DNA of 64,000 nucleotides from Ophelia neglecta (taxonomy: Eukaryota), in NCBI GenBank assembly GCA_965285935.1, contig OZ260661.1, positions 125,550,001 to 125,614,000 on the forward strand, given 5' to 3'. Position numbers and translations under genes: made by a program. Position 1 is the first letter of the stretch. The number at the start of each line of letters is the position of its first letter. Of this stretch, positions 1,550 to 62,542 are shown piece by piece. Under the pieces are notes generated by a model. It made no database searches and was not told where the DNA came from. It worked only from the letters and a program-made list of their open reading frames with translations.

Positions 1550-2081
1550 CTGGGGCCACATACTCAACGCCTACACTGTGAAAATGTACTGAACGTACTG
1601 GGTTGTGCATTGACTTCACTAAATCTTGTATGAGTGAATATGTAAAAATGCCGGCAAACACAGACAGCATAATATACACCAAATTAAGGCTCGCTCGTAA
1701 GCATCGTTTTCGGAAGGGGTCTTCCTGGAGGTATATGTCGTCCGGGTCATCCCCTTTCAACGCCTTTCTGTGTGTGTTGAACCAATAACATTCTGTACAA
1801 CGTTGGCCATTTTTCTTTGAGTTCTGGTCTTCTACACACTTTTGTTTACTGAGCTTAGGGTTAAGGTAGAAGGTTCTGGTTTTATCGTTCCCTGAACTGT
1901 GACATGGATTTTTCTTTTTCTCCGTCGGAAGTCCATACTCACAGGACTGTTGATGATAATTCCTTTCTTCTAGGGCTAGCTCGTTTTCACAATTTGACAA
2001 AACAGAGTCGGTATCAAACGAGCACGTTTTATCCATGGCAGATGAGCGAGGACTTTTGTCCTCTGTGACAGACGTAGACAT
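1550..2081 (-). CDS. PACC1: PAC/TMEM206-like proton-activated chloride channel, variable N-terminal+TM1 exon A (partial CDS, continues after splicing)
   Basis: ORF 1542..2081 contains RKRCLRASLNLVYIMLSVFAGIFTYSLIQDLVKSMHNPVRSVHFHSVGVEYVAPG, matching human PAC TM1/post-TM1 as I recall it (VYRTITDFREKLKHPVMSVSYKEVDRYDAPG). It ends at CCAG|GTGAGT (GT at 1549-1548); 532 nt = phase 1. Start could alternatively be the GCCATGG Met at 2036. Confidence 0.85.
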
Positions 2082-2257
2082 AGAAAGTCAATACGGAACA
2101 AAAACCATAGAGCTAGCTTGCAGCCTCCCTTCTCCAAGTGTGACTATTTTGACAGTACCTTGTCCTAAAGCGTAAGTCCTGGCAGTGTCAAAGGAAAACG
2201 TCTTTTGGTGACTGTCCCGATCGTGGATAACGCTTCAAACCACCCCCTGCGCACCTT

Positions 2258-2366
2258 GCTCAATTGCGCGGCACACAATTCTGATAACACCGCTATCAAC
2301 AACACCAGCCTCTAAATTACTTACGTACCACCAGCCCAGCAATCAAGATGTGTGTTATCAAGTCCA
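2258..2366 (-). other. Upstream homology block of exon A (shared with B, C, D and the 29.9 kb orphan)
   Basis: Plus strand GCTCAATTGCGC..ACAA..CCGCTATCAACAACACCA..TAAATTACTTACG aligns with 13098-13164; GTGTGTTATCAAGTCCA resembles ATGTGTTAGTAAAGTCCA near 62577-62594; TAACACCGCT recurs at 22929-22938. Confidence 0.6.
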
Positions 2367-5300
2367 ACGCGTTCCTTGTGTCAATTTGATCCCTGGTAAC
2401 TAGTCTGACGAGGCCGTGCGACTGCAATGACATTATTCTCGGTTCCTTTTTAGCGCAAATTAGCCAAGGCCAATTTTCATTCATGAACGATAATCCTTCG
2501 TTATATTATTGTGTTTCGTGGCTTTTTTAGTAATGCCCAGGCATCAGGGTTTGTGTAATTCATGTTTTTGTTACAATAATAATAGTGCCAGTATTATTTA
2601 ATGTGCCTTTCATTAATAACATGACAGCTAGTATAGTTTGGCTGACCTAAGCACTTACAGCTCATGGCTTGCTGTGTAATGCATCGCATAATGTAGTTGT
2701 TTTCTCATACGAGACACATATTGGCGTAATCGCAGTTGTCAGTTTAGTACATTCCTATATATAATGTTCTGATGATAAGTTGCATAAGTGGAATATGGTG
2801 CAAGGCCATGTCATTTAAATTGAGAATGGGCGAAGAGAAGTGTCCATGTGTATCGAAAGGCCATGTGAACTCCGCTATTCCTGCAATTCAGTACGACATT
2901 CAGTTCAGTGCCGTATCAATCCAAAAACGGGAGTAAATACCCGTCGAGCAATCAATAAACCGCAAGGGATTATCAAGTAAATCGAATTCTTTAGAACCCG
3001 AAACTTAAACTCCCGGCTGCTAATGATGAATACGATTGTGGCGAAGAAAAATGACAAAAATAAATAAATATATGCTGTGCATATGTTCATGATACCATCA
3101 ATACTTATACTCAAATCATATGTACCTTTGATCAAATGTGGTAGATTATTCACATAATGTATATCAAATATGCAAAGTATTGTTTTTCAGCAGATTGCAG
3201 AATTCAAAATCATATTGTAATACCATATTAGATCAGAGCAATTCTCTGCAGCCAAACGGCCATGCATACAGCAGACAGAGATATATCGATAATATCATTG
3301 AGTAGGAAAGTGAAAAATCGGTCGCTGAATACTCCTATATCGTATATCGTTATGTCAGACCAATACTGTAAAGGAGAATGAGTGTATATCTTGTACGCTA
3401 TAGAAAATCGCAGGGCTAAATGCAGCATCCTGGCTTGCCCTGCCTTCAAGCATAGGCCGATTCAGTGTCAATGATGAAAATGCCAAAATATAGCCTCACC
3501 ATTGACACAAATTGCATAAACAGTTCTCTAAATAATGGTGTGTGCATTATAAAATTAGTTTCATTATTCAGACTACCTTAGGGTTATACTAAACATATTA
3601 ATATTAATAAGGTTATGTCGTTCCCTACCAGCTTCCAAATTGCAATTGTTTATTAAATTAACAAACGTTTCTTTGCTGAGCAGCAGGCAACAGTGTTTTC
3701 ATCACTTTATCGTCGTTTTCAATCGCATTATGGTCCCGCTTGGTATGAGGTAATTCCGGCTAATGGAAGTAGATGACACGAAATTGCGAACAAATTGGCA
3801 ACATATTGCATTCTGTCCAGTACTTAATAGTGATGCGGCTTTTCCAAAAGAGGTTTAACTTGGAAGCTAGCGTGCATATCAATCATTTAAATTTTGTCAG
3901 CAAATTAGAAAATCATCAGCTCAAAGCGACGGGTTGCTGTTCAGAGCATTTCGTCGTGGTCGCCACAACCTCGCATAGTGGACCCATCTAGAATGTAAAT
4001 ACGCTTATCGAATTCGTCCATTATCATGCCACCATGTTTTTAATATACGTCCTGTGGAGAACTGATTATATACTACATTTAGAGATTGAGCTTATTTGTT
4101 TCTGTAAGGCATCCTGAAAACTATTCTAATATCAATTACAAGGCTACACTTAGTAAATAAATGACTGGAAAACGAATCGATTAAATAACCATTACCCAAA
4201 CAAACGCTAGTAAATCCCTCCGCGAAATGCGATAAGATATGTGTGTTTCGGTTTACTGGAATTGCCAAGTCTCCTATTTAGGCGGTAATAAGAGAAATAT
4301 ATTAAGAGGACTATCATGCTGCAAACAGTCTATATGAAGCATATTTTTATACAAGTTCCGATTTACAGACCGTGATTTGATATTATGCAACAAATTTAAT
4401 TTCAGTCGTGACAAGCCAAACATTTCCTGCAAGTATTCCATTCGAACAAAAACGTTCTGAACTCGGCACATGTACCTCTTAATGAAGGAAAACTCATTAA
4501 TTTATACTGTTTCGCAATATAAACCTCACTGTCCCTCACTCCAAACCACCGCACTTGTGCAAACGTGAATAATGGCTTCAATTCTCCTGTGTCGCTTGTA
4601 TATTCACACATGAAGTGGCGATATGAATTTCCACCCTCGTCAAGTACCAGTATGAGACCGGTCGCCCAGCAACAGTGATGACTAATACCAAGCTGAAGCC
4701 TGTTTATCGTAGACAAAAGCTAAAACGACTCAACGACACATATATGAATGAGCTACAAATCGAGATAGAATTGACGATATAAGTCGCAGTATGCAGCTGA
4801 AATAAGAGTGGTCCAATTCGTGTATTTTATAATTAACGTCTTATTAATCTTTCCTCGAATTTCACACCTCGATATAAACAGATACAAATTTATGATGCAA
4901 TTTCTGATACAATTTAAAAGTGGACTGAGCTGCGATTTATTCGTCAGTGGAAATCAGATATCATTTACCTGCCACCAGATGCTACATATCCTAGTCCTGT
5001 TTCATACTGGTACAAACACAGATTGACATAATTTACAACATCAGACGTTGTGCATTAAATCAGCAAGGAAAAAAAACTAGTCAAGGTACTGCTGTATATT
5101 ACTATGGGTAAGTTATTCTGATCATTATAGAGCCATCAAGACTGATGTCTAATGATTTGTATAATTTAAGACAGCATACACGCCCTTTGCCATTTAAGCA
5201 TCAGAAGAACCCCGCAAAAATAAACAGCGATCGACAAGACGCCCAAGAACCAATTCTATTTTCATTAGAACTTTCCAGCCAGCAATACGAGTTAGAATTA

Positions 5301-8300
5301 TCTTTCCGCTTGGCAAATTAACTTCATTTATTATTGTGCCCAGATTAAAAAAACTTAATTATAATGCATATTCATAGAGGTTGAATGGCACTTATGAATA
5401 CGCCATATCGAGGAAGAACCAATCAGGAGATATCTGATTAGAGACAGAGAAGAACGATACCATGACAATTTACGTCGAATAAGTTACCAAAGCCTATGAT
5501 AAAGAATGAAACATGACAACACCAAGCAAACCGTAATGAATGTACTTCCTCGGACAGTCTAGAAGATGTGAATGACAACGCACTACCTACCAAACCAGTC
5601 ATACGGCTAAAATTCCGGATACCATTCCATTGCAAATATATCAAGCTTTAACGAGGACAAATTAAGTCCTCTGGAAGCACCCCATACCCCCCCCCCCCCC
5701 ACCTCGGACGATGGTTCTGTGAGTATTTGTTCTACGATATACAATCCTCGCAATACATGGTCATGAAGGCAAATAAATATGCATGTGGTTCTGATGTAAC
5801 GAAGCAGGAATTACGTTTAGAGGCAGCATTGCCATCTACCATATACAATCGTCGAGGGATTGTCACTCTGTCTGCCTAGCCCTCGGACTCTTAGCGGGAG
5901 ATTACATTTTGCCTAGACATGTCTGGGAAATATTCGGTGGGAGTAATAAATAAAGCATGGGCTTGTTTTCTTATGCAATTGTTGCCACTCAAACTCTATC
6001 CACAATAATTGCGGGAAGAAACATGGTCACCGGAGTTACTTCCTAAGCACGTGGTGACTAACAAACCGCTTTCTTTAATGGGTCAGGTATATTACATTTC
6101 TTATATCCGACAGGCCACCAATAGCCTTTTGCATCATAATGTACCATCACATGGGACGAAAGTAAAGCTCCCCGACGACGAGGCCATGTTTAATTAAACA
6201 TGCGACAGTGGCAAGGTCGGGTCTCCATGCAGGACCTAGTATTACCCGAAACTAAAATAATGCATACTGAACCCTGCGGATAAGGCATTAATAAGTAATT
6301 ATTCCGGATTCACACGACCAACTGTCCCCTTCTGAGTGGCTTATGGGTATTCAGTCATAAATTGGTGTCCGTTAACGTTAAGTTTTAGGATCCAGTTTCC
6401 ATGATAAACAAAAAGGATCGATTTGGATACATCGCCCATTTCCTACTGAATGAGCTCAAGTGCGCTTTTTAATACAAAAGCAAGGAAAAGAACATGTCAT
6501 ATAAAGAAAAACTCAATTCGAATTGAATGGAAAAGACAAGGTGGTTAAGGTAAGCAAAAACAATGGCACACACTAATATTCAGCCAATCAGCGATTAAAA
6601 GCATGTTTGAACAAACGTGCCTTAAGCCTTGATGTATAGTCACCGGACATCTCATACCGTTTGGCAATATCTGCCATAGCTTAGATCCATATACATGAAT
6701 AGAAGATGCTGTGTCACCAGCCGTGACCAGTCTGGAAATTTGGCGGATGATAAGATATAAATAAATATGAAGGTGAGCAACTTTCAAAATGTTCCGAAAG
6801 GAGACAGGCCATGCAGTGCAGGGCAACATTGAGCGAATGCAGCGCTCGGCGAAAGGGGGATTACATGTGCCCTCCTACTGACAACTAATTCCCATAAGAC
6901 ACAACTTAAAGGAATTGCAGCAGTCCAGTCGTGTAATAAACAGAGCAATATATGTTTTTTGGTTATATCGTTTAATGATTTAACTGAAATGTGGTTGTTT
7001 TAATCACGGGGGGGGGGGGGGGGCATGGCGATGGACCATAAGTCCCGGATTACATACTGGTCTTTCTTGAGTAATGACGTGGTTTCGCCAACTGCAATGG
7101 AGAGTGTATTGCGCGCAGTCAGTTGGCACTATCCCCTAGGCATTGTCAGAATTATGATTTAGAAAGTTGTGGACATTTACCAATAACGCTCAATGGAAGA
7201 GAATTATTAGCCTATAGATTCAGGAGACCAGGGCTTTAAAGCCAGATAAATCCGAGGACCTTGAGAGCCCCCTCCCCCCTACGTTTAGGCCAAGGAGCTG
7301 CATCGGAGCTTAGTAAGCCGGGTTGGTTAGCCGAATGGAGAGCCTTGTGCAGCCCGTGAGTACTCATGTAATCATGGAGCCGAGGAGCATGAACTACCTT
7401 AAGGAATAGAAAGGAGGACAGTAGGCCACATATTCGTAGTTTTTCGGTTTGTCGGGGTCTACGCCAGTTTTCTCACAAGATGCGCACAAGTTATGTTAAA
7501 AGATATCCCAATGGGTAAATGAAGAGTTTGTTATTGGGGACAAAGTTGCCTATACAGCACCCACTGCAAAAGAAGCCAAGCGGTACTGCATCAATGGAAC
7601 ATGTGGATGATGGTAATTTTCCAATAGTTTTGCATACTTTAGCCTCGGATACCATGCACAAGCGTAAAAACAGAGCAACATGTATCAGAAGTTGCATTCA
7701 TTGTTGACTGATTTTGGTCTGGGACCACATTTTATACACATTTAAATGCTATTTCTTTTTCACCTAAAACGAAACTTTTTCAACAGAGCCACTGACATGT
7801 TACGTTCATAGAGAGCAGTCTTACCGTCATACCTGCACTTATGCAGGATCCCACGTGGACCAGGTGCAAACCAAGAGATCAGCATAGGTGGTTTACAAGC
7901 CAATTTCAACTGACCACGGATTCGGGGTAGGGTTGGGGTTATGGAAAACTATCTCGATGGTATACTTACGCTCTGGGTGGGATCACAGCGATCTTTGAAG
8001 TTCGTACGTCTAGTCAATGTGTAATAGAACTGTGCGACACGTTTTCTATTGCGTGTAGAGCTGGTGCTATGATTATTATGATATATTACGTAGTTTTAAA
8101 GTAATACCAATTGTAATATACCATTAAATCATAAGCCCACATCAGCGAAGCACACGCTACTGGATACTTTAGTGGCCCCTCGATCAAAATCAATGTTTAC
8201 TAAGGTTAGTAGGGCCGTCAGGTATCACTTTTATATTTATTTGCTAATTTGGGAATATGGCTCGAAAACCATGGACAATGTCGCATACACACCATTGCAA

Positions 8301-11300
8301 TTTATACTATGTGTACTAGTAGTTCAACCAATGTACAAGCGCTGATTAACACAGGGCACTAGAGTCTAGGATATCGCCATAATGCAATTCTTGGCAAGCA
8401 TTTTGGTCGTGTTGTGCCTACACGTTATTAGACACAACATAATCCCTTCCTAAGCATAAGAGGTTGTTATGTCTAAAATTAAACAATCGAGATGTAAATA
8501 AATGTTTCATCTACATTACAACAAACGTATTTACCATTAGAGTACACACCTCTAGATTCTGAATAAACTTAACAAACAGTAAATGAACTATTTTGTTCTA
8601 ATTTAGTATAGTTATCAATAAGGTGTTATTATCAAGGGAAACTTCGTTCAATTTTTAATGTATATACATGTATTTGGTTGATCAACATTCTGTCTGGTCA
8701 ACGTTTGGTGTGAATTTAGTTTTTTTTGGGAATTGACAGTATGGGCAGGATAAAATGGGAAGACACATAAATACAATTAAGCTTTGTTTAGTAGTATATG
8801 TTTAGGATTATGATATATATCTCATAAATCCAAAATACATAAAATCAACTAAGATATATTTCCAACTAAACGGTGTCACAGGTTCAGCGAGACGAGCGGC
8901 GCGAGTGCTTATATTATCGCCCCCTTTTGAGATAGCGCAGATTGACCATTTGGCAGTAAGAGCTTGCAGCATTTGAAAGCCATTATGTTTATTGGTATTG
9001 TAGGTTCAATATGAATCGTTATATCATACGACAGAAGCTGTCTTGGAATAAGATCAGACTGAGTTACTGAGTTGTCACGACCAAGGGCCATTCTTTAAAC
9101 TACGATAAATAAACAATGGAAACAACCCACGCAAAGCAACTGTTATCATATAGTTGTGTGGTAGGTCGTTTGTAGTTTTATGCAAGGTAAAATAAAACCA
9201 ACGATATATAGCGATAGAAAATCATTCCTGGACGCATTCTTGTCTCTTTAGATCGGTAACATGAGAATATTTCGTTAGGTAAATACTTGTTATCTAAAGC
9301 CATGGCGAGGCATGTCAGCATTCTTCAGTATCTGTGAGGAATAAACATTTAAATATATGCATTAATCATTGATAATTGGTAATTCGTTTTTAGTTCCTGT
9401 GCTGGCCAAACCATATCTGTCCACTGATGAAATGGACAAACCATGCATGGCAATGTTAGGTGAACACAACCGAAACTACGTTAAGTCACCATGTCCTTGT
9501 TTTCTAAACCTTAACCCTCAGAACAATGCTGTTAGTAGTATATTATGCACTTTTATTCAATTTGTCGGCAACTAATATTTACCATGGAGCAATCATTTTA
9601 CTAAAATAAAATACACTTGATCGTTAATATGAACAACAAATATGGAAAGGGGAATGAAGCTTCTCATATGATCAACTCTTTAATTAATCAATTTATTCTA
9701 TTTCGTAGCTGGCCATACACGTTTGCATTGGTAACATGAAGAGGATGGTGAGGATTGTCCTTGAGTTTCATTTACTAATACCAGTACCAGTCATTTGTTG
9801 TCTTGGTAAATGATAATAAATGCCCCGACTCAATATAGTTCGGAAATTAACATACAATCACATAATAGACCAGCAAACCAATTACATCAGATCCGAGTTT
9901 ATTCCATCTAAATTGTGTTACAGACTTATTCACTGTTATGGAATGGCAAATTATGATGTTCTCGGGTGTACAATTATTGGTTCAGGGTGAACTCCAACTG
10001 AACTATGACATATTACATATCACAGTCATTATTCTGTCTTCCATACATGAACTCGAGCATTTTCCTTGTATCCATTGAGTATACATATCTATGTTCATTA
10101 TTGTATCTTATTTACGCCAAGCAATATACAGGTAAATCCAATGTTATATTTAAGGAATTTAACTAAGTTTGTGGGAGTATTGACCAGGATTCCTTTAAAT
10201 ATTAGAAGGTCCGTGGACAAGGAATAAACAACATTTTGTCATAGGAAAATCAAACGAAATGTCACGTTTCTACTAACGATAGGTTATAGGGCTCTGAATA
10301 ACAGAGAATAGCTAGTATGTCTGCGTGACCTGCATCTAATTCATGACCTTTACAGGATAGTCCGGGATACAGATACCGATTTACCTATTATATCGGATAT
10401 TTTAAACTCGAAATAGTAGATCAAATTAGTTTTTCCTGTGGTAGGCAAGAAACATCTCTGCCTACATAGATGAACAAAATACTGATTATCATAAAATCTG
10501 ACAAGATTTTAATTGCGGAGTCCAATAAGTGCATTGCGACATTACTTGTTAAATGATGATGTTAATAAATATATATATTTATGTGTTATCATAGAGAGAC
10601 GATCTGATTATAATAATTGATTGTTATGCAGATGCTGGTGAAAGTCCATTCGAATAAGACCAGATTTAATGGTCCATGTTAGGTAATATGGCAAATACAA
10701 TTTGCCGCCACCATAACCGATAATAAAGATTAAAAAAAATTAAGGTTTTAGAAACCTGTACAAATGATTTCTTCTTCATCAGTTAAAAAACTATCGAACA
10801 TGTTTTGATAATAACATACTTTACTTAGGCCTTAGATTTTCAGATTAAGGTAGGTAGGTAAGGATATAATTCTATTTTATTGGAAAATACTATCACAGAG
10901 CGTACGGAGTGGTTATTGCTGTTTAAAATTATGGGTGTTATATTGACAAAAAGCAAAGCCCACAAATTGCAGAAAGGGGCACTTCCACTAAGATCAAAGA
11001 AGAAAATAAAGCAAGGTGTATGACCCTCAAAATTTCAATAAATAATAACTTCAAATTCATAATCTTCTAGATAAACTTAAGAAGATTTTAAAAAGTATGT
11101 CCCTGAAATCATTGATATGCTAATGCACGATTATTGTTGGTGAAGAGATTGGTAAGCAACCCTACTTTAACATTTTGGGCGAGATATGCACATTATAGAG
11201 ATGTATTTACAGACTTGTTTCTTTATGGCAGGTAAGCAATCACAAATTTCCCACATCGCCTGCAGACAGACACATTGTTTGCCAGACAATGCAGCTTAAA

Positions 11301-11550
11301 ATAATAAAGGCAGAGCCGTTTGTCTTGGGTCGGACGGGTAACCGGAACCTCACATATTATTTTGTTTGGCCTAATTTTTGTTAATGCAAATCTTTTATGA
11401 AACAAGATATTTACCTTAATGGTGCTAATGCTAAGAAACTAGAGTAGATTCCAATCAGGAAATTCATGACCATTAAACTGGAATTATCCATTACATCGAC
11501 CCTAATTATATCAGCATGAGTCGGCTGCTAGCCCACAAATATGAATTCTC

Positions 11551-11707
11551 AGCTTAGTTTCCAATTCCACCAATTAAATTAAGCTAGGTCCCAGCTGCAC
11601 CAATTAAAATATGCAAGTTTCCAGCTCCGTCAATTAAAATAAGCAAGTTTTCAGCTCCATCAATTAGTATAAGCTAGTTCTCAGCTCCATGAATTTAAAA
11701 TGAGCTA
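11551..11707. repeat. 30-bp minisatellite, about 5 diverged copies
   Basis: Units such as AAGCTAGGTCCCAGCTGCACCAATTAAAAT, ATGCAAGTTTCCAGCTCCGTCAATTAAAAT and AAGCAAGTTTTCAGCTCCATCAATTAGTAT with period 30. Confidence 0.9.
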
Positions 11708-12402
11708 TGAAACTACTTGGAGACTAACATTTTGCAATCTTGCAAAAGAAGTTTCTGCAACTGCCGTACATTGTGCATATAGAAAATAAATGTTTAGCTA
11801 TTGTCACAACAATGTTACTAACAGAAAAGACGCAATTGGCTGCCCATAGACAAATCAAAATCAAAATTACCAGGTACTTTTTGGTCCCCATTGTACATGT
11901 GGGAAGATACCTGAGGAGCAATCTCGTTAGGACCATTGAGAGCGATTCAACTTGTTACCATAACACAAGGTGACAAATTAGCGTTGACATCACCGCTACA
12001 TGGTGTCGTCATATAAAGTATGTTGTAGAGATATTATTTTGTAAACGATATCATGTCAGTAAATGAACTAAACATTTAAACAGTTCAGGTATGGCTGAGG
12101 CGAGAAGGGAATTTTGCTTAGTTTTTCAATACACGCTAACAATAACTGCATTTGAAACAAGGAACTACGGCTCAACATAAGATATCAGAACTGAACGAGT
12201 CAGCTGCATTGGTCAGATAAAGTAAATGTTAACTGTAGCATATTGAACAATGATCTGTCCAATTTGAAGAGTCATAGTTTTTGCTTCTCTAGTTGTAACT
12301 AAAAGATAAATAAATGTTCTCAGAACTGTTTAAATATATAGCTTTGTCCATAAGGGTGAAACATTGTAATGTAGGAGGTCCCGATAAAGCCCTGTCACTC
12401 AC

Positions 12403-12883
12403 CTGGTGCCACGTATTCCTCGTCTATTCTGTGATAATGTATTGAACGCACCGGATTGTCCATCGACCTTACTAAATCCTGTATTAGCGAATATGTAAAG
12501 ACACATGCAAACACAGCCAGAAGAATGTACACTAAGTTAAGGCTGGCCCGTGAACATCGTTTCCCTAAGGGATCATCCTCGAAATAAATGTCGTCCGTAT
12601 CTAATTCTTGCGGTGTGTTCCGGCGCCTTTTAAACAAAACACATTCTGAGAAATAACCTCCACTCTTATTGGTTGTAGTTTGTTCCGTGGCCTTATGTTT
12701 ATTGAGTTTTGAGGTAAGATAGTATGAACGGATTTTATCCTTAGCAGGACGCGTACTGGCAGTTGGCATTTCTTCTCTTGGAAACCTTTCAACGCTGGAT
12801 TGATGGCAAATTCCTCTTTGTTCTACCGAATGCCCAATATGGTCGGATGACAAAATATCATCCAACGAACGTGCTCCGTTCAT
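12403..12883 (-). CDS. PACC1: PAC/TMEM206-like channel, variable exon B (partial CDS)
   Basis: ORF 12395..12883 has KRCSRASLNLVYILLAVFACVFTYSLIQDLVRSMDNPVRSIHYHRIDEEYVAPG; donor CCAG|GTGAGT (GT at 12402-12401); 481 nt = phase 1. Confidence 0.85.
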
Positions 12884-13097
12884 GATGGAAATGCGTTTGA
12901 ATATGTCATTTGTGGAAGCCTACAGGCATGGAGAGCCCGAGTGTGTTATCACAAGTCCATCAGCAGAAATGGCCAGATGCGGTGGGAGAGACAGTAGCAT
13001 CCCAGGTCGCTTTCACCTCCGACCTGGGCCGGTTACGTGAGTGGCCTGTTGATGACTGATCCTGTATCTGGATCTATACCAGCCTTTTCCGGCTGTC

Positions 13098-13164
13098 GCT
13101 CAAGTGCGCATTAAACAACGCTCACAAGCCGCTAGTCAATAACACCATCTATAAAATTATTTCG
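13098..13164 (-). other. Upstream homology block of exon B
   Basis: GCTCAAGTGCGC..ACAA..CCGCTAGTCAATAACACCA..AAAATTATTTCG is collinear with 2258-2325. Confidence 0.6.
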
Positions 13165-22092: not shown

Positions 22093-22588
22093 CTGGTGCC
22101 TCGTATTCGTCCTCTACGATGTGATAATGAATGGAACGTACCGGATTGTGAAGTGACGTCACAAGATCTTGTATGAGGGAATATGTAAATACAGCAGCAA
22201 ACAGAGCCATCAAAATGTACACTACATTAAGACATATGTGTGAAAAACGCTTCTGCAGAGGAATATATTCTACGTTGAATTCATCAGGGTTATCGTCTGA
22301 TTCTGCATTCCGGAGAACGTCTACACAAGGAAATCCCAAACAAAATTTCTTTTTTCTCTTTGAAGCATTGCAGTTGGCTGACACATTACGATCGGATATT
22401 GGGTTAGAAAACATAGTTTTGATTTTGTCTTTCTTTTTGTCAAGCACTGGTTGGACATCGTCAGACAGTATTTTCTCCCCAAACGTCTCTTGCATGTGTT
22501 TCCTCTGGCTTCTCACACCTTCTGTGTATTGTTGATCACCGCATTTTTGTGAAATACTTGTATTCTCCACCGAAGACATCTGTTTCAT
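22093..22588 (-). CDS. PACC1: PAC/TMEM206-like channel, variable exon C (partial CDS)
   Basis: ORF 21971..22588 has KRFSHICLNVVYILMALFAAVFTYSLIQDLVTSLHNPVRSIHYHIVEDEYEAPG; donor CCAG|GTAGGT (GT at 22092-22091); 496 nt = phase 1. The ORF tail beyond APG is intron read-through. Confidence 0.82.
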
Positions 22589-24814: not shown

Positions 24815-24890
24815 ACCTATGCGACTTGAACAAGCCTTATCAAAGGTTTAGCAGAAGGCAGCGACCTTATCAACTGAGCTACTGAGGTAG
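24815..24890 (-). repeat. Degenerate tRNA-like / SINE head
   Basis: Minus strand has an A-box-like TAGCTCAGTTGATAAG and a B-box-like GTTCAAGTC at tRNA-like spacing; no intact cloverleaf. Confidence 0.35.
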
Positions 24891-44127: not shown

Positions 44128-44185
44128 GGTCATGCCAAGGCATTTTATTTGTCATGCCAAGGCATTGTATTGGTCATGCCAAGGC
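44128..44185. repeat. 22-bp tandem repeat, about 2.6 copies
   Basis: GTCATGCCAAGGC occurs three times at 22-bp spacing. Confidence 0.9.
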
Positions 44186-46813: not shown

Positions 46814-46978
46814 CAGTAAACCTGGCCTAAATGACACCTGACAATTAAGGACACATTGACTTTTAAGGACATTGTTTTTAGTACGGTTGTAATATTTTAC
46901 ATGTAGATTACCCTGTGAAATAAGGACAACTGAGAAAAGAGGACTGATTTCCCAGGTCCTAATTATCAGTTTTCACTG
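46814..46978. mobile_element. MITE, Tc1/mariner-pogo-like
   Basis: TA-CAGTAAACCTG ... CAGTTTTCACTG-TA termini, internal repeated TAAGGACA motif, same architecture as 59627-59804. Confidence 0.65.
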
Positions 46979-49900: not shown

Positions 49901-52900
49901 TATCAAGATATATCAAATAAGCCTGATGCAAACAACAGGCACTTCCAGCCGGAGTACTAAAAGCAACCAATATTGGCACCAAGAATGGTCATATCATAGC
50001 AATGCAGAAAAGGCTATGTTTTTAAGGTCTACAAAAAAATTGGTATCCACAATGTTTCAGGGGCGTTCTGTTCCCTTTACAGTTTGGGCGCTAGATATTT
50101 ATTTGCTGATGTGAGTAGGGGTGTGGCTCCTGGTTCGCATTGAATTCGGAACGATATAATGTACTCCGCTTGATTAAAGATTTGGGCTTGTCGAATGCCT
50201 TGTATGCGGAACAAACAGCATACTCTTTTATGTTAGATTACATTTTATTTTGACACTCCTTGTTTATCATCTGGGCTAGTGAGAGTTAAACTCAGAACAT
50301 GGATTGTCCAGGGGCCTTTAGTGGAATCAGCTTTAGATCAGTTTCGATGTAATTCCTACTTATCAAATACAACGGGAGGGTTTTGTGTTTGTTCCACTGA
50401 CAACAATTTCCCACCAATATAATAATGGCTTTTTCGCCTACAACATCAATCAAATTTCAGCAATCTTGCATTTGGACGAAATATCAAACACCACCATAAG
50501 AATTTTATCCTTTTATCTCATCGAAGGCATATGCTGTTACTTGTTACCAAAGTTCATGCCTGCAAGTTAACCATGCCTCTCATAAGCACTCTTGAGCTAT
50601 CACAGCTTTTGAAGAAGCTGAGAATGAACAAAGCCATGGATTGTTTGTTACCATTATATCTTTAGTATTTCAGGTGTTACGGCTTTAATAGTTGTCGATA
50701 TTTTACTTGCCGGCCTGAGAATATTGCAGATAATAGCATTCAGTTTCCATTCTTCTTTCATCAAGTCACGATACATATATTTTGTACGTATATGTATCTT
50801 AAACCCATATAAATAAGCATAAATCGACATGCTAAAGATGAACAAAGAGGATAGAATCCTCCAGCTAAATGACCACTCAAACAAAGGAAATAATTCCATA
50901 AAATTATATCGAAATGATATAACGTAAAAATAATGAACTTGTACAGGTCCAATATGATAAAACAGACAAGGTGTAAGATGATATGAGTACAAGTAGCCGA
51001 ATAAAGACAAAAATCCCGATTTTGATGAAGAACACTCTGTGTAAACAAGTTGTATTCTTACAACAAGAGGATGATTATTTATAATACGTATGATGAATAA
51101 AATAGGATATCGAATCTCATCCTACTTTTGCAGTCGGCGTTTTATGTTGCATCCCCTGCCGCTCTGTGAAAATGAGCATTCTTGTTCCAAAATGTATTTA
51201 TACTGATTTTTTCACGTCAAAACAATATTTCTCTTTGCTTTTGAATAGGTACTATTTTGAACGGATGTACCCTTTGTACTTGTATTTAACTTCAGAACGT
51301 GTCTCCACTTATGTCTCAAATGGCAGAAGAAGCTTGGACTGGACATATAGATCAATGTAACCACTTGTTCTGGTGTTTTTATGGAAGAATAACAATCTAG
51401 AGAAACGTTACCAATATGTATAGACCTACAAGAATGAAAAGGCCGAACATAAAAAACAACATCATTTCATGTCTGTGTAGCTTTGAAAAATCCTCTTCTT
51501 TCTTACTGATCGATGTATAACTTAACTCATGCACTAAAATAACATATGTTTATGTTGCATATCTAAATCAGAGATAATATTTTCTTATGTTAGAAAGCCT
51601 ATTTCCAGAAAATATGAGACGTTCATAAACCAAATATTGATGCAAATACGAGAATTGTACCGAAGAAACAAATGGCAACTACTTTACTCCAGGACATGTC
51701 TGATTACATTGAATTACATTGTGTAGCTTTGACTATTATGTTATTTGACGAGTAAATTGTGATTTTCTAATACAAAATTATCATGCTACTATGGGTAGCC
51801 TATCACCTAGTTATGCCACAGCCTTTGTCTTAATGCTAGCATTCACCAGTTCATCCAACAGAATGTACCTTATACGTTCCCACTCGTCTTTCGTCAAACA
51901 AAATATATTTGACAGATATTCAGATAAGTCAGGCTGGTGATAAAATCACGTTGTGCTAATAATGTATTTGCAAGGATTTGCTTTTTCTCCGAAGGCCTTT
52001 TTTACGAATTTTTGAAACTAAGTAAAAAAAACAGGAGAAATTGTTTAGCAGAACAATTCATAGCAGGCAATACTGTTAGAAATGATATTCGTTATCGACG
52101 AAGCTTGTTGGAGCATGTGAGAAATATTTATAAATGATAAATATATCTGAGAAAATACATAACATTTATTCACGGTGCATATCTTGCATATAAATAGAAA
52201 ACAGAATTTCGCTGAGAGCCACCGGTGGATCTGAGGTGCTAAGATAAATTATCAAGTTATCCTTGTTATGACAATATGGCATCTTTAGGCTATGACCTAA
52301 GTGCCTGGAAAATAACTTAAGTGCATTTTGCCCACATCATGGTAATGTTATGATACTCCTAAACTTGTGTATCCGCAAGAAACAGTCAGCTACTGAAGCA
52401 CTATTAATAGTGATCTTGTTGTGGATTATCAAAGTATGTTTGTCGTCCGTGATAAAAAGCAGAACAGATGTCAAAATAGTTAATAAATATTCAAAACCTT
52501 ACAAATCGGTCCGAAATCGCAAACAACTGTCAGCTGCAGGCCGCAAATATCCATCCCCCTTTACCACACTGTAAGTTAGCTTGTAAAGATTTTTGTTTAA
52601 ATGAACAAATTGCAATCAGTATTAGTCGGCAGTTTGTTATGATGTGTCTGAGAGCACAAAACAAACGAATTAGTGGTCAACGTAAACTGACAAAATATGT
52701 GCCCCGAGGGATTTTGATCTAGGCTATAGTCGGAGGAGTATATAAGCAATGTTATAATAGTTTCTTAATTCATTTCCGCCATTTTTTCCAATTTTGGCTT
52801 TTCTTTACTTTACTATGATTATTTTCCATAGTGTTATTATGTGTCCGATATTTCGATGCATTTAGCTTGTTTATAAAGGTGTGTGTTGTACAGTTTACAG

Positions 52901-55900
52901 TTCATTGCTGACTTGTTTATACATCATCGTAAAAATATGTACATAACAAACATCGGTAAAATATGTACATAAATAAAATATAAATAAATACAATAAGCAC
53001 ATCTTCATTAAAACAAAAATGAGTACGTACACAAATAAATCATCTACGATGATTTATAATTGGTGCCTTAAGTGAGTGGATTTAAAATACGCTCCCTCGC
53101 CTCAAACATCGCATATAGCATTTAAGAAAGAGTTTTTGTCACATATTTATCCTAAGATGACAGAATGGCAACCAGACGATGCTCATCCTCCATGTTACAT
53201 AAGTTTGGCATTACATTACGTATTAATGATACAAAAGTCTGCCTCACGTTATTAAGTTTTACACATTTTAAAAGAAAATGCTTTTCATCCTCAATACCCA
53301 AGCAGCATAGATGACATATTCGAAGTTCTAAGGCGACCCTTTTAAAATTCCAAGTCGCGGCTACTGAGTCTTAACCTTGGCATTATATGGCCTAACTTAC
53401 AATCAGTGATACAACTGGTGTACAATCCAGTTCGAAAGAAGACTTATATAAACTATACTTTCTAAGCTTAGTTTGGTCGACCAGGGAGATAAATGAAGAG
53501 AGCCATACATTGACATAATGAGATTGTAAGTGCCGTTTAAAACCATCAACTATAGTATTCTCATTGACACAATGACTACACTGGAGTCAGATGGTGTGAG
53601 TGACACACTAGTCGGTCCCTGATGGTTTCGGACTATCATTGATGGATGATTTTGCTGTCTGCCGGGTATCCCCCTTCCTTTATTCAGCACACATTAATGC
53701 ATATTAATTATTATTGTTACAAACAGTGGTAGCCAGTACTCTATCAGTAGTTCTCTCCAGATATGACAACATAACATACACTCTTGTGTTTTCTGTAGTC
53801 TAAACGACGACGATGCCGGGCAGTACATGCTTGTGGGCTGCATATGTATACCAACACGAATCAATATGATACGCTGACTGTGAGCATCAATTAAATCCTC
53901 GCCAATACGAGACTATTTTTTTAAATCTCGATATCATGAAATGTTTACATACAATAAACGATTTTGATATCAATTTTCTCGTATTTAATTCATAGTAAAT
54001 CTTCAAAGACAATAAAGCGAGTGCAAAGCTGATCCCTGTAATTCCAGATAAACTTCAATTAAACTTTTGACTACATTATTATTATAATCAGTTAAATCTA
54101 AATACACTACATTATCATGTGAATTCCCTTCGGAAATCATGTGGTTTAATTAGGAGCATGCAAATTCTAGTGCACTTGTACAGACATTACCATCGTAGGT
54201 GATTACAGGTGAATACTTTGCGATACTAAGTTTCGTCGTGATCACTATAAGAATAGGGGCGTATTGGAAAACAACTTTCATTCCTTCAAGAGAATGTATT
54301 CAAGAAAAAACTGTATTGTCTTCAGCGCAAAATCACAAAGCAAAATCGTTAATCAAGAATATTCCATTACACCTGTCCGAACTCGTTAGGAACCATCAGT
54401 AGTAGACACAGAAACAGTAATTCCCAGTTCCCTAACGCCAGTTCCCTAACGTTAAATAAGCATAAAACGAATTGTTAAAAAAAATTGAATTGATCAAAGT
54501 TGCACCTGTTAGGACATCATGAAACATATGGCATACACTATGACATATATGTGTTATAGGTGAAAAGAGTTGGAAACTGTTGGGCGACACCTGTAAGACT
54601 AATAGCTCACAATACCATCTCCCATCGCTGTACACATATGCAATGTTATTTTATATACGTCCCTACTTCATCAATCACCTTTATTAATGGACCGTGCCGA
54701 CACTAACCTAACTGAAATCATAGGCAGGAGCTCTAAATATTTGGATTCAATGTAATTACTTGGATCCAATATAGATATCTTGAATCCAACATAAGAGAAA
54801 TTCCCAAAAGAAATATACGCCATACAGGGCGTCACTGGAAAATACCTCATACTCTCGTACACAACCAACTAAAAAAATTCACAACAGCTTAAGAGCAACC
54901 AACCAATACGCAAAAAAAGAAGTTATAAATCCCTAGGTAACTCTAAGGTTTCATCACAATGGGTTCAATAGATTCATTACTGTACAACTGAAATACTTTA
55001 TATATTTATATTGAATTCATATAAATATAAAAACGTGAATGAGTACCCAACCACACAAACCAAAATCGACGGTTTATTTTTACTTGGCTGTAGCAACAAA
55101 TATTACCTAGCATCCAGAAACCCTCACCACCTCCTTTATCACACAAAATCATAGGGCATTCTAGGCATGAGTTGCCAAAATCCCACGAGGCCTTTTGTAA
55201 GAAAATACCGAACACAAAGATATTCACGCAGTCTAAAGTAGATCACATTAGAATCCCATGTACATATATATATATTACCTTACCTACTGATAAGTTTGCC
55301 GATACTAAAATACCACTCACCGTTTACTGATAACTAGATAACCGTCATGTTAAAACTATCACCTTGTGTCACCTGATACAGGTTCCAAATTGATACGCTG
55401 TTCACAAACCGCGAGAGTGTACGTTCTCCCATTAAATGTTAGCATTTTCCACATTACCACACTATGCATTAGATGCAGACCAATTTAGGAACGTATCTCA
55501 TTGTAAGGAAATGTCAAGTTACCGAATGTTATCCAATGTGGTTTTGTATCACACACCCCCCCCCCCCCGCCCCCGACCCCCCGCCCATCCCGGCCAAAAC
55601 AGCCGTATCTTCGGACGCGCAAGAAAACTTGACAACAATAGACTATAAACAAAAGGTTAAAATGATAACTGTGAACTTTCATACGTTGGCGCAAAAATCC
55701 CATATTATTCATTAGGTTTTGTTAAATCCAAATTAAAGGGATACAAAAATCGGCATAGGTAGCTTAAGCAAAATCATTTCCATCTATGTTTGTAGCATGT
55801 TGAGTAATTAAGGCATCTTCGCTTCACAAAACAAAAATCATAAATGGCAATTGTTTTCCCATAAGGAAAGCCGAATGTGTAAACATCTAATGTAAGAATA

Positions 55901-58900
55901 CAACGAAAATATTGACAGAGCTAATGCTTCGAAAATAGCAAGTTATTTCGCCTTCATTACAGATGCAGGGACAAAAGAGAAAGAGAACAGTAAGAAGAGT
56001 GGACATTAATAGGTCACTGCCATTAAAAGCTTTTAATGGGGTGTGTGTATTGTGTTTATATTATCATGGAACTCTTAATAAAAGAATATCATTTATCAAA
56101 CTGGTGGCAGAACTAAGGTCCTCTATTCATGGGTAGTACTTAACATAGCACAGAGGGATTGTGTAATATATGGTGCCTGTATATATTATCACGGCTCAAA
56201 CTGCACTTGAAAAAAGAAATATTGTAAGATTTTATAATCTTGATTTGTAAAATGTATTCTTCTAACATTTATGTTACGCAACGACAAAGGTGTACAGCAA
56301 ACGACATTATTAATCGATCTCTCGTACAAAGATAAAAACTCGCCATTGTGTTAAAACGGAAGACTCTACGTTGTGGAGAAATTAAGCTTTGTTTTCTGCA
56401 GCTCTTTTATGCTCAGTCTATGCATTTTTTTCTAGAATATATTTATTTCTTTATTTTTTACCCAACGCAATAATATAAAAAGTATAAGATAAGATTATTT
56501 ACGTTCGATGGGTCATTCTCCTTAGCTGTGTTACAATAGATTTTAAATTGTGTGACTTGTGTTAGCACTAATAACTAATTCCTATTTCATGTCTTCACAT
56601 AGCGTACGCCCAAAATAAACAGTGGTACTTTGCCAACGGCAGCAGGTGCTGCAACTGCTTCTAAAATTCGTGGTCTACAGTTTATTTAAAATATCTATGA
56701 ATATAAGCAATTTTTTTCTTGCCAACGTGCACTTTTTAACTAACAGAGTAATATAACGTTTTGAAATTGAAAAAAAAGAATCTCAATTAATTCTTCATTG
56801 CATTTTTCAGAATATTTTTGTCTTTGTGCATACCATCAGACATGCTTCGTATTGTCACTACGGCAAGGGATCGGTAGAATGGCTTTGTGCACAGTAATAC
56901 ATAAGAGAAATTTGTCCTGCTTTTATGCTATGGAATTGAACTAATCAAGTAGCACACGAATAAAAGTTAGCACTGTCATGTACATAATATTCTAAAAATG
57001 TATTGTCTGTTCGGACCTATCTGTCAGTAGACCAGTGTGACCGTAAAATAATAAATAACGGAAAGTCGTGATTGTGTTACTGGTGATAATGCATGGGAAA
57101 ATAATCTTTTTCTAGAAAAGATATTCCATTGTAATTCGGAATGAACTGTTATGTAATATTGAAACTCTATTAATTTCGATTGTCGATCTGACTTATTTCG
57201 CTACAAAACCAGGCAGGCCCGTGATTCAAAATGACTGCTTTGAAAAGCATTCAACAAAAACCGAGCTTACCGATAGAGATGTTGATCAGGCTGCCTTTGG
57301 GGTATTAAGTTCAATTTCAAGAAGATAGACATTTGATAGAAAGTAATTTCCTTTCCGTTCATTTTTTATTGTTCTTGGTCGTCTACATTTAAATGGCTAT
57401 CACGAAGACAGATGATAACATAAACAAGACTAGGCTTAAGGCTCTATGATTGGACTTTTTTAGCTTATAAGTCGTAAAACCAAGAAGTTTTACTACAATG
57501 TTCATTAGACATGGTATCAATTAAAATATTCACTTTATTATATGATCTAGTTCCTTCCTTGCATGAAATTTGTAAGCGTTATATATCCCTTGCGCAAAGA
57601 TAAATTTGTATTCATATATGGCCATTCTTTAAGAAAAACTACCACCGAAAGAGACTTAAGTATTCAGTGAGCATCTAAGTGAGATTCGGTTATGCATGTA
57701 ACATTCACTCGGGAGTTCAGTCGACACTGTAGCCTCCCAGACGCTGAAAAACGATCACCATATAGAGTTTCTGAGGCAAATTATGCATAGGTAAATTCAT
57801 ATACTCCGACTCTCATAGCAGTTTAATATTTATGAACGACAAGGAAAAGTATCTCAGGAGTAGGTTCTTTGGCGATTTAGTATACACAAGGTAGATATAT
57901 ATTGGTATATGTTACAGGATATACATTCTATTATTTTATTGCTATAATGAAATTTGTACTTACAGGCTTTGTAAATGATATCACGTTTACATGATATGTG
58001 CATGTCGATAATAATAAATAAACTGCTAATAAAAAAAGAAAAAAAATAGAGTTTCCGAGCTAACATTGACTATTTAGTAGATGAAGGGTGAATGATGGCT
58101 GACTTGTTCTTAATAAGAAGATTCTTGAGAAAAGGGGCAAATGGGAGCCTGTTGTTCTAATAGCCAACTTCCACAGAGATGTTCATGATGAAAGGCCTCG
58201 CAAAGAAATACTTGTTTATGTATTTTATTGAAATGCAATGAATTTATTTGCATCCGCACATTTAACACTTTGGTATACATTTGAAATATTCAATATATAA
58301 ACAATTAAGGCTTCAAAATAGTTGAAATGTTTAGGTGAATTTGTAGCGAAGTGTTTCAAGCACGCATAGGTGCCGCACAGTACAGCTAACAGGAATGGTT
58401 GCTGTTCATTTGCTATTTTAATACCCTAATTCCCCATAAAAGGCATAAAAACCGGCAACTGGGGATGAATGTATATGAGCCCTTGGCTGCAGACTCCGGA
58501 TGGCCTCGGACCGATGAAATAGACTATTCTTGTTAGGGCTTTTGCTCTGTCTGTTTGGTATCAACTTCACGGCACCAATCAAAAAACTCCTACCAATTAA
58601 ACAAACAATTTAAAGGTTAATGGTCATTCATAAGTCATAAATTAATGGAATGGCCAACTTTCGGACTACACAATTTCATGTTTTGATATTAATATCATAA
58701 AGATGCATGGACTAAACAATAACAATGTATGTACACAGTTTTTCCTGTACTAAACGAATTGAGAAAAATGGTGGAATGATGGTTCTTGGGGGAGGGGTAT
58801 AGTTTACTATGATAGTAAATGTTTGCCAACTGTCTTCTTTTATTTGAATGTTTTATTTTTGTTGTCGGATTAATGACAAAAGGGATATAACAAGGTATTT

Positions 58901-59626
58901 GCCAGGAACGACGTTAATATAAGGCGGTATCAAATAAAGATAGGTGTCCATAGACATCAAAACAGCCTCGAGCACACACGGCAAATGCAAATTTATCTAC
59001 TACCCCATGAATAATGTATTAACATGCTATGGTAAGCGCGGCCTCTATATGTTGATAAATGAAGTTAAATATGGTAACAGATTCACAAGAAAGCTGACAT
59101 GTAAATGTATTGCCACCTAGAAGATGTATGTTCGCCATAACCATTGCTGACATGGGCAGTGGTAGCTCTGTTGCCACCTGATGATTTATGGGATGTTCCT
59201 ATTGTAATGACAATGAGCGATAGCTTAGAGAGTATAAAAGTACAATAGAACGCATAGAGTGTATAAATATACAATAGGTCTTCGCTGCTTATTTATTTAA
59301 CCATATCCACCTTGGGGGTTTCTTTGGTGAAAAATAAAGTTCTTACTATATATTTATCATAGTGGTCTAGATAAGGGTCTGTTGTGTTCGCCACAGCTGA
59401 TTAATGATCTGTCCATGATAGCCGTATTCATTAAGGAAGTGACGTTCGAGCACCTAACAAAATGCAGCTGCCTCCACTGCCTTCTGGCCCTTTTTATGAA
59501 GGCAATATTTGAACGTTTGGAAATTCATACATAGACGGAATTGGTTGCTATCCGACGGTGGAAACCTGTTGTATCAATTGATATAGCACAAATTCTCTGC
59601 GAATCTCAAACAAGCATAGGATACTA

Positions 59627-59804
59627 CAGTGAAACCTGTGTTTGTGGTCACCTGTGTAATAAGGCCACCTGCCCACTAAGGTCACTTATTGATGACCCAA
59701 TCCCCATTATGCCTGTGTTAACTGACCTGTCTATTAAGGTCAACTACATAATGTGGTCAGTTTCCCCTAGTCCCTTGCATGACCTGAATAGACAGGTTTC
59801 ACTG
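59627..59804. mobile_element. MITE, Tc1/mariner-pogo-like
   Basis: Perfect 13-bp TIR CAGTGAAACCTGT / ACAGGTTTCACTG, TA target-site duplication on both sides, internal repeated TAAGG(C/T)CAC motifs. Confidence 0.85.
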
Positions 59805-60276
59805 TATATCCATAAAACATTTCCAAGTTAAAAACCACGCAATCACGGGGCAGGCATGTTTCACGTGCCCTACTTAAAATGTCGGTGGCTAAATGTATGT
59901 TGCTATTTCTATAAAATGGGGGCAAGGTAGACATCATTAAAATGGAATCTAGGACAGTTTGAAATGTTCTGCCTGAGAAAATAGCCTGATCTTATATGTG
60001 TTATTGATATGCCAGATTAATAATTTGCAGCAACACATAATGGTATTGTACGATCAACTGCAGGCTGCTACTATATACACATTCAAAAGAGATAACACGT
60101 CAATCACTACATAGCCCTCGCATAGCAATTAATAATCACAAATATACTATATATTTTTTCTTTGAGACTCGTATCAGGCATTTGGTTAATCCGATTACCT
60201 TTGATTAGAAACGGCGGTTGTCACCATAGTTTCATCCGCTTTTCATCTGCCTAATACAAATCACAATGGAAAACCT

Positions 60277-60846
60277 TTAAATGCCAAACAAAAACGCCCG
60301 AGAAACCAGCATGTTAGATAGGCAAGAAGGCTGCAGTAACAAGGTCAACGTTCGGAAATAGAATTGACAAATGGGTACGGTTTTTTATTAAATGAAGATA
60401 AAAACTATGATATTAGGGTGAAAACAAATAACAAAATATTCTCGGGGAAACGAAATTAAATAACAAAATAATGTCGGGAAAAAAGAATTAAACAGTTTCA
60501 CGGGCAGCCAAACTAAAAACAGAATTACCCTTACACATTGCATGTCACTTTGCAGCGTCTTATTGTGGGTACACCGGTATAGTGTTTAAATGCAAAATAA
60601 CGCGCCAGAAATCAGCATGTATTGTAGTACAGAATTTAGCAGTAACAAGGGTTAACGGTTCTAAAAGAAATGGCTAGGTAGTTATATTTTTTCTGTAAGG
60701 CAAGGGAAAAACTGTATGTTTGGTTGAAAACAATTGGCAAAGTTTTCTTGGGGAAAAACGCATTTTACAAATCCTCGGCTGCCAATATGAAAAAAAAAAT
60801 TGTCATATATATAACATGTCACCTGCAGCGTCCAAATGAGGGTACA
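60277..60846 (+). repeat. Diverged ~300-bp tandem duplication
   Basis: AGAAA(C/T)CAGCATGT, GCAGTAACAAGG, TGAAAACAA, GGGGAAA and CATGTCAC..TGCAGCGTC..GGGTACA each occur twice in the same order (about 60277-60575 and 60586-60846). Confidence 0.75.
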
Positions 60847-61794
60847 TTAACAGAACAATTAATTAGTTTTGAGTTCCAAACAAAGTACAGAAACTCATTC
60901 TCAGCATTAGTCAATGGCAATTCAAGCAGACTAATATTGGATATGAACATTCAACGACCATTATGTACAGACCCTGGCCAGAAAAATAGAGAATTCAATA
61001 GGCTAGGCGGACTGTATTGCTATTAAAGGGAAAAGGGAAATTCATACTACCCTGGTAATCCGGATATATTTATTATTAGGAAATCTAGGTGTATTTCTAG
61101 ATTGCATGTTGTTTCATTACAACTTTAAAGTAGCAAATTATCGTGAATCTGTGCGATACGGCGTGTACTTGTACTGGTAGGGGCAAGGAAGTACCATACG
61201 CGTGAACGTCACGACTTGGTGCACTTATATATTCGTACCCGTGAATATATTCTTGCCGTGGAATCGACAATTGTTTCACTGATAAAAAGATCTTCTTCAA
61301 TTGTAGTATGCGGCCATTTTAGCTTTCCTTCTGTTAGCGTGCCCCAGTATCTCGAATCAACTTCAAAGCCTGGATGACTGATAAGTTCGTGACAAGCATA
61401 ATTTTCCGGAAAAGATTCAATACATAACTTAGTGTGCCTAATTAGATTCATTTCTTTATATACACGACATACATTCATGTTTGCGGTCAAATAACATTTC
61501 TCATCACTGTAGCTACACAGCCTCGTACGTCTATGTGAAACTATGGGTGAAGGTACGAGTAAAAGTAAAGGTTGCTCCCCACAAGCTCTCTTATCATTTG
61601 AATGTTTGGTGTTATCCACGTGGAAACATCTTTACAATATTGTTCGGGGAAGGGAATTATCGACAATGGACACAGTATTGAGGAAACACATTCCAAGAAA
61701 ATAATACGGAATAGCCAAACATAGGCTTTTGCATATAAGACTACAGACATTACCATTTAAAGTAGTTCCCTATATTCGTACAAAAGTACCTTAC

Positions 61795-62542
61795 CTGGAG
61801 CGTCGTAGTCATCGACCCTATGGTAGTGTATGGAGCGCACTGGATTATTCATTGACCTCACCAAATCCTGTATGAGTGAATAGGTGAATACTGCAGCAAA
61901 TAGTGCAAGCAGGATGTAGACAATGTTAAGACATGCGCGCGTGCAACGCTTCCGGAAGGGATCCTCCTGCATGTATATATCATCCGGGTCCTCTTCTTGG
62001 GGTTTCTTTCGGCGCCTTTTTAAACAGGGACATTCATTGCTGAATCCACCACTTTTTTTTGAAGGCTTTTCTTCAGCAACGCTTCGACGATTCAGTCTAG
62101 GCTTGATATAAAAAGTTTTGAATTTGTCTGACGTTGCAGGAATTTGACTAGTACCTTGTCCGGTATCTGTTGGAATGCCGTTTGGTGGTGTTATTGGTTC
62201 AGATATATCTTGTGGATGCTCACTGAGATTTTCTAACCCCTCTGTTCTTTCCATGCCTCCTGGTCGAGGAGCGTTAGCCGTGTCCAGGGAGTGTGTCTTG
62301 TCCATACTGGGCGTCCTTGGGCCTCTGGTCTCCGTGTCCCAATAGGGAACAGAACACTGTTTCCTCAGGGCTAACTTCCGGCGTCCTTTGAGAGTGGTAG
62401 CTAATAATGGGGGCGGCCGGGTCACTCGCAGCGGAGTACTCTCCTCGTGCGGAGTACTCTCCTCGTCCGAATCAGAAGCAGGGTCCTTGGCTAACTGGCC
62501 TGGGTCCGGACTCTCCTCACACAGCCACCGGTTCTCCGCCAT
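61795..62542 (-). CDS. PACC1: PAC/TMEM206-like channel, variable exon D (longest N-terminus, most similar to vertebrate PAC; partial CDS)
   Basis: ORF 61757..62557; first ATG at 62542 (AAAATGG context); RKRCTRACLNIVYILLALFAAVFTYSLIQDLVRSMNNPVRSIHYHRVDDYDAPG; donor CCAG|GTAAGG (GT at 61794-61793); 748 nt = phase 1. Confidence 0.88.
62431..62466. repeat. Perfect 18-bp in-frame tandem duplication inside exon D
   Basis: GCGGAGTACTCTCCTCGT x2, encoding EESTPH-EESTPL. Confidence 0.9.

Follow-up and report, generated by a model that had tools for sequence, protein, structure and literature searches.

A candidate set of four alternative first coding exons in a PAC/TMEM206-like channel gene of Ophelia neglecta

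In the clustered protocadherins (Pcdh alpha/gamma) and in UGT1A, paralogous first coding exons stand in tandem on one strand, each with its own ATG; they end in one donor phase and serve a single constant set of exons. The variable exon of these genes carries a transmembrane (TM) segment together with the adjoining domain. The proton-activated chloride channel PAC, or TMEM206, is encoded by a single gene according to the literature, which reports no paralogs, and no homologs in groups below the hemichordates (PMC6663466). In human PACC1, the variants V1 and V2 include or skip exon 2, an internal exon of 61 residues, and this choice affects whether the channel resides in endosomes or at the plasma membrane (PMC12901492). 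Here, a stretch of 64,000 nucleotides (nt) of Ophelia neglecta DNA was analyzed (the window; positions 125,550,001 to 125,614,000 of contig OZ260661.1, referred to as C1), together with the sequence around it. The window contains four paralogous exons of a PAC/TMEM206-like gene, and the locus shares with the protocadherins and UGT1A the features listed above: own starts, a common donor phase, a single fitting acceptor and no constant exons in between. The locus is considered likely to be a single gene that encodes a two-TM channel subunit of the PAC/TMEM206 type and has four alternative first coding exons. Such a protocadherin/UGT1A-like interpretation is well supported by the genomic and evolutionary evidence presented below.

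The four exons, called cassettes here, are exactly four in number and lie in tandem in the same orientation on the minus strand, spread over about 61 kb. The cassettes and the adjoining elements in the window are as follows (window coordinates; aa, amino acids; the caret marks the exon border).

1550..2081, minus strand: cassette 1, proximal; ATG at 2081; 177 codons plus 1 base; donor CCAG^GTGAGT after 1550; predicted product 430 aa.
12403..12883, minus strand: cassette 2; ATG at 12883; donor CCAG^GTGAGT after 12403; predicted product 413 aa.
22093..22588, minus strand: cassette 3, with the most diverged tail; ATG at 22588; donor CCAG^GTAGGT after 22093; predicted product 418 aa.
61795..62542, minus strand: cassette 4, distal, with the longest tail; ATG at 62542; 249 codons; donor CCAG^GTAAGG after 61795; predicted product 502 aa.
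62543..62662, minus strand: 5' flank of cassette 4, about 120 nt; candidate 5' untranslated region or core promoter; still aligns with the flank of the ortholog in a second species (species 2).
1..1549, minus strand: first part of the intron common to the four predicted isoforms; continues to the exon A acceptor at C1:125543069, which is 6,931 bases left of window position 1.

Each cassette corresponds to the N-terminal portion of a PAC/TMEM206-like protein, from the cytoplasmic tail through TM1 to the first ectodomain strand. All four donors are in phase 1, as the exon stops after one base of the Gly codon in the motif APG, and the consensus of the four donors is CCAG^GT(G/A)(A/G)G. The preliminary description of the window, which was made from its letters, had reported four such paralogous exons on one strand with a common phase-1 donor in the APG glycine, and the four minus-strand open reading frames (ORFs) and their donors at 1550, 12403, 22093 and 61795 bear this out. 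The C-terminal 60-75 residues of the four ORFs form a closely similar block with the motifs FTYSLIQDLV and NPVRS, ending in APG. The cytoplasmic tails are 15-35% identical between cassettes, while TM1 differs at few positions and the linker between TM1 and the ectodomain varies too. An in-frame stop codon is found 0-12 codons before each ATG, adjacent to it in cassette 3 and two codons off in cassette 1. Reading through each donor into the intron leads to a stop after 1-39 codons. Five ORFs in the window reach 130 aa, and four of these are the cassettes.

The rest of the gene was located 7-12.5 kb left of the window, where one set of constant exons with a phase-1 acceptor, all on the minus strand, encodes the ectodomain and TM2.

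C1:125542995-125543069, minus strand: constant exon A; acceptor ttccag^GT, which completes the Gly codon; ends AAAG^GCAAGT (GC donor).
C1:125540070-125540298, minus strand: constant exon B.
C1:125538039-125538183, minus strand: constant exon C.
C1:125537532-125537843, minus strand: constant exon D (coding sequence), which reaches the stop codon.

A single constant set to the left of window position 1 had been predicted in the preliminary description, and exons A-D (C1:125537532-125543069) answer to that prediction. The distance to the exon A acceptor is 8.5, 19.3, 29.0 and 68.7 kb for cassettes 1-4, respectively. By arithmetic on the exon coordinates, from which the product lengths given above were also obtained, the reading frame closes with all four cassettes, giving coding sequences of 1290, 1239, 1254 and 1506 nt (430, 413, 418 and 502 codons).

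In the proposed gene, transcription would begin at the start region of each cassette, and the 5' splice site of that cassette would be joined to the single acceptor of exon A. Cassettes lying downstream of the one in use would have no usable acceptor and would be removed as part of the intron, as in the clustered protocadherins and UGT1A. The predicted outcome is four subunits of 430, 413, 418 and 502 aa that would have the ectodomain and the pore helix TM2 in common and would differ in the N-terminal tail, at a few positions of TM1, and in the TM1-ectodomain linker and first strand (human residues 62-115). The likely pay-off would be promoter-specific expression and isoform-specific trafficking or gating, perhaps with different gating set-points. 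The exon anatomy, the single constant set, the purifying selection on the four cassettes and the conserved exon borders in relatives are observed; separate promoters, splicing, channel function and acid activation of the predicted subunits are inferred.

Ordinary tandem gene duplicates would have a set of constant exons after each cassette. Such sets were looked for in 144 kb (C1:125510001-125654000) and are absent. A tblastn search of this region with the four constant exons returned self matches only. The same 144 kb were also searched by hmmsearch --max with a PAC-family hidden Markov model (HMM) that combined six PAC proteins of nemertean, annelid, hemichordate and vertebrate origin. Over the complete set of 7,994 stop-to-stop frames, with the filters disabled, it gave eight matches, which are cassettes 1-4 and exons A-D (E values of 2e-36 to 2e-9), followed by a match at E=0.35; the eight exons cover positions 46-331 of the model. 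In agreement with the preliminary description, no ectodomain or TM2 exon was found between the cassettes by either tblastn or hmmsearch --max. The search was extended to the whole genome of 762 Mb, in which a cassette profile, run in six frames, detected the four cassettes only (E 1e-38 to 1e-42; next match E 0.9). A whole-genome scan with the Pfam family PF15122 (TMEM206) found the constant exons once on chromosome C1, directly left of the window. A second PAC-like locus, on contig C8, has exons A-D at 43-50% identity to the C1 gene and was detected at E 1e-9 to 1e-14. Since a locus this diverged was found, diverged copies of the constant exons behind the cassettes would have been detected as well.

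The evolutionary rates of the cassettes were compared in pairs. Synonymous divergence is saturated, with dS between 1.0 and 3.3 or undefined, while over the TM1 core of 65 codons dN is 0.14-0.28 and omega is 0.06-0.19. In a gap-free block of 46 codons, the six cassette pairs differ at codon positions 1/2/3 by 7/3/20, 11/9/20, 9/4/31, 11/7/20, 7/1/32 and 8/6/25, the pair with 7/1/32 being cassettes 2 and 4. Among the cassettes, only the last 140-250 nt of the exon are similar at the nucleotide level, and the similarity ceases within 8 nt of the donor. An ortholog of cassette 4 is present in species 2 (P0001, on Logan contig L026) with the same ATG, the same long tail and the donor kept as CCAG^GTGAGT. 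The comparison of the two gave an omega of 0.10 over 242 codons at a dS of about 2. In blastn, window positions 62662-61790 align with positions 127-991 of L026, so that about 120 nt of the 5' flank of cassette 4 are included. All four cassettes are under purifying selection, and their ATGs and donors are intact. The saturated dS, the constrained core and the cassette-4 ortholog together indicate that the duplications are old, dating from before the split from species 2, and that the four frames and donors have been kept by selection. Selection on an exon of tail, TM1 and one strand, with a kept donor, points to splicing of the cassettes, for which exon A is the sole compatible partner. The proposal in the preliminary description that the cassettes are interchangeable on shared constant exons is thus supported by that sole compatible exon set and by the purifying selection on all four.

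The assignment to the PAC/TMEM206 family was supported by profile and structure comparisons. All four cassettes match positions 7-61 of PF15122. Taken exon by exon against a cut-off of 27 bits, exon D scored 60.9, exon B 46.7 and cassette 4 30.4, while cassettes 1-3 alone scored 18.9-24.2. The cassette profile aligned with residues 62-115 of the human PAC structure 7jna, that is, TM1 and the first ectodomain strand (E=9.8e-9). The full-length nemertean ortholog matched the PAC structures 9hqn and 7jna at E=9e-56 and E=2e-53, respectively. The homology with vertebrate PAC/TMEM206 (7JNA, 7JNC) extends over TM1, the ectodomain and TM2, and the identity is about 38-40%. In the stretch of TM2 aligned with the human LFKAAEF segment, the basic residue is kept as Arg. 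Human PAC residues D91, E94, H98, E107 and D109, at the junction of TM1 and the ectodomain, tune pH sensitivity (PMC9351481). D91 is invariant across the four cassettes. The residue preceding the H98 position is H, D, H and N in cassettes 1-4. E107, the acidic pocket partner of H98 in human PAC, is conserved in none of them, its position being occupied by S, R, I and R. Published tests cover one invertebrate PAC ortholog, a hemichordate protein, which remained in the endoplasmic reticulum (PMC6663466).

Annelid and nemertean proteins are the closest homologs of the gene, and its constant exons resemble those of the annelids Ridgeia and Owenia more than those of the nemerteans, which points to an invertebrate source, most likely an annelid. 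The gene models of Tubulanus polymorphus (XP_074645017), Lineus longissimus (XP_064632722/XP_064632728) and Owenia fusiformis (CAH1783881) share the APG^I and TSK^V junctions of the C1 gene, where APG leads to I(A/V)(I/V)(Y/F)PGG and TSK to VRL. In the DNA of these three species the exon borders fall at nucleotides identical to those of the C1 gene. Like the C1 gene, they have five coding exons, a phase-1 border at APG^I and a long first intron, and their constant exons are 58-92% identical to those on C1. They differ from it in having one TM1 exon instead of four. Exon A ends in a GC donor in the C1 gene (AAAG^GCAAGT, C1:125542989-125542995), whereas a GT donor occupies this border in Tubulanus, Owenia, Lineus and Ridgeia. 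In Ridgeia, whose sequence extends to 7.6 kb upstream of exon A, no cassette was found; contig L029 carries exons C and D only. In a weakly resolved tree of 62 columns, cassettes 1-4 group with the species-2 exon (84/98), with cassettes 1 and 2 as sisters. This group stands apart from Owenia, Capitella, Lamellibrachia, the nemerteans and a third species (species 3). In the exon D ORFs P0015, P0016 and P0019 of relatives, the last exon is apparently split by an extra intron directly after the LHR of TM2; exon D is unsplit in the C1 gene and in the nemerteans.

Several observations weigh against a single gene with four alternative first exons. The array is not general, as Tubulanus, Lineus and Owenia have one cassette each in the gene and 10 kb upstream, with a first intron of 7.5-15.5 kb. 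A look for the same array in related genomes, as proposed in the preliminary description, gave the cassette-4 ortholog of species 2 and single cassettes in these three other spiralians. The single cassette in two nemerteans and the annelid Owenia indicates that one cassette is the older state and that the array is a lineage-specific expansion. These genes are also a more fitting baseline than the single vertebrate gene invoked in the preliminary description, which is the wrong comparison for an invertebrate. Conservation of the array could be checked in one other species and for one cassette, cassette 4, the species-2 and species-3 contigs spanning 1.3 and 2.3 kb. Furthermore, the tail of cassette 3 is nearly neutral against the others, with an omega of 0.64-0.73 in a poor alignment. 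At the position of the human proton sensor H98, every cassette has Asn, a residue shared with most spiralian homologs, so that acid activation is not assured. Alignment and blastn of the sequences upstream of the four cassettes gave no convincing shared promoter motif. Three public runs from one sample covered introns and exons of the 6-kb constant region alike, with no joints; the runs are therefore genomic DNA and contain no transcript evidence. Moreover, no spliced protein of Ophelia neglecta or a close relative was found in protein collections, either with the cassette-4 core or with exon D, which was compared with 1.84 billion representatives. The matches were exon-sized ORFs from genomic contigs and gene models of more distant species. 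A protein search with cassette 2 gave no match, not even P0001, which was expected to qualify, so that this blank is uninformative.

An alternative to separate promoters was considered, in which a single promoter and a non-coding leader exon right of cassette 4 would serve all the cassettes, and these would be mutually exclusive internal exons chosen in the manner of Dscam and similar exon clusters. This arrangement would fit the lack of promoter evidence at the cassettes, and there is a precedent for an internal TM1 exon in a relative, as in isoform X1 of Lineus 56 residues from an upstream exon stand before it. However, the in-frame stops before each ATG rule out a common coding exon, the conservation of the cassette-4 ortholog reaches just about 120 nt upstream, and no conserved intronic pairing elements were found between the units; a shared leader is therefore considered unlikely. 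By the same stops, a Dscam-type cluster of internal coding exons with a shared upstream coding exon was ruled out altogether. The likeness to Dscam drawn in the preliminary description does not hold, the cassettes being first coding exons and not internal ones.

It could also be that the proximal cassette alone is functional and that cassettes 2-4 are unused relics of partial tandem duplications. RNA evidence is lacking for every cassette, and the relatives get by with one. Against this, the four frames have remained open over 160-249 codons despite saturated synonymous sites, in a window where one other ORF reaches 130 aa. In addition, the cassettes have a strong excess of third-position differences and intact donors, and the distal cassette is conserved in the second species at an omega of 0.10. 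The decay of cassettes 2-4 is thus judged very improbable. Still less credence is given to cassettes 2-4 being stand-alone small genes, whose unspliced products would be single-pass membrane proteins of tail and TM1, for example channel regulators. Short products are formally possible, as a stop follows 1-39 codons beyond each donor, but a consensus donor has been kept at the ancestral exon border in all four cassettes despite saturated neutral sites, and their similarity stops at the donor, with no conserved C-terminal extension.

If the alternative-first-exon interpretation is correct, the locus would be a member of a well known class of genes, and the novelty is the occurrence of that design in a family described as single-gene. 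The surprise is moderate and not fundamental. The locus differs from the protocadherins and UGT1A in having only four variable exons, which encode a tail, TM1 and one strand rather than a whole ectodomain or catalytic domain. It also differs from them in that no conserved upstream promoter element was found, and promoter choice and splicing are predictions here. The isoform diversity of human PACC1, like that predicted here, is centered on the cytoplasmic N-terminal part of the PAC subunit, where the human protein has a YQEL endosomal sorting signal (PMC12901492). By analogy, a trafficking role for the divergent cassette tails is plausible. In human PACC1, however, TM1 is constant, whereas here whole first exons, including TM1 and the TM1-ectodomain linker, would be exchanged. 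The inclusion of human exon 2 is the only known splice variation of PAC (PMC12901492), and no paper was found that pairs PAC/TMEM206 with alternative first exons, in line with the preliminary description, whose author knew of no account of the arrangement for this channel.

The locus departs from the published account of the family (PMC6663466) in three respects: it is a clear protostome homolog, a second PAC-like locus is present on C8, and one locus appears to be equipped for four subunits. The presence of the family in spiralians is not new to databases, as automatic annotation already names 'proton-activated chloride channel-like' proteins. The cassettes differ in the N-terminal tail, where human work puts trafficking signals (PMC12901492), and in part of the pH-sensing interface (PMC9351481). 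The four cassettes can be regarded as natural chimeras on one constant ectodomain and pore, which may inform on the roles of tail, TM1 and linker in gating and sorting.

PAC is a trimer, and mixed channels are therefore possible. A more far-reaching proposal is a system of subunit diversity, in which four promoters and co-assembly would give up to 20 trimer compositions differing in trafficking and in pH or gating set-point. The tails would then act on trafficking, and the residue beside the sensor position (H, D, H or N), together with the first strand, would act on the pH or gating set-point. The proposal is speculative and its chances are rated as low; if true, a combinatorial PAC repertoire would exist in an animal group said to have no such family.

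The second PAC-like locus (L016/L020) lies as follows.

C8:61049083-61050513, plus strand: second PAC-like locus; exons A-D within 1.5 kb.

No TM1 exon of this locus was found by the cassette profile within 19 kb upstream or elsewhere in the genome, and the exon D match ends inside TM2. The locus may be a diverged paralog with an unrecognizable first exon, or a partial or decaying copy. Two weak PF15122 matches with internal stop codons (E about 2), at C8:60952464-60952724 on the plus strand and C1:15792502-15792603 on the minus strand, are either noise or decayed PAC-like fragments.

When the three genomic runs were compared with the constant region (L024, C1:125537201-125543200), many single-base differences and small indels were seen (e.g. 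at positions 247, 1784 and 2804), including a 14-nt insertion. The indels listed and most of the single-base differences are intronic, with a few differences in exon D and its 3' flank (e.g. L024 337-446). These differences look like heterozygosity or haplotype variation of the sequenced material.

The 39 kb between cassettes 3 and 4 contain six ORFs of 111-136 aa without a Pfam match, and no Rfam match was obtained there. At window positions 61209-61619, on the minus strand, a 136-aa ORF with a GTG start is located in the intron directly downstream of cassette 4. It is the one ORF of the window besides the cassettes that reaches 130 aa, has no Pfam match and is probably a chance ORF. Finally, a tandem repeat with a period of 30/60 nt (about 4.6 copies, 80% matches) is present at window positions 11556-11707, about 700 nt into the intron that follows the cassette-2 donor.

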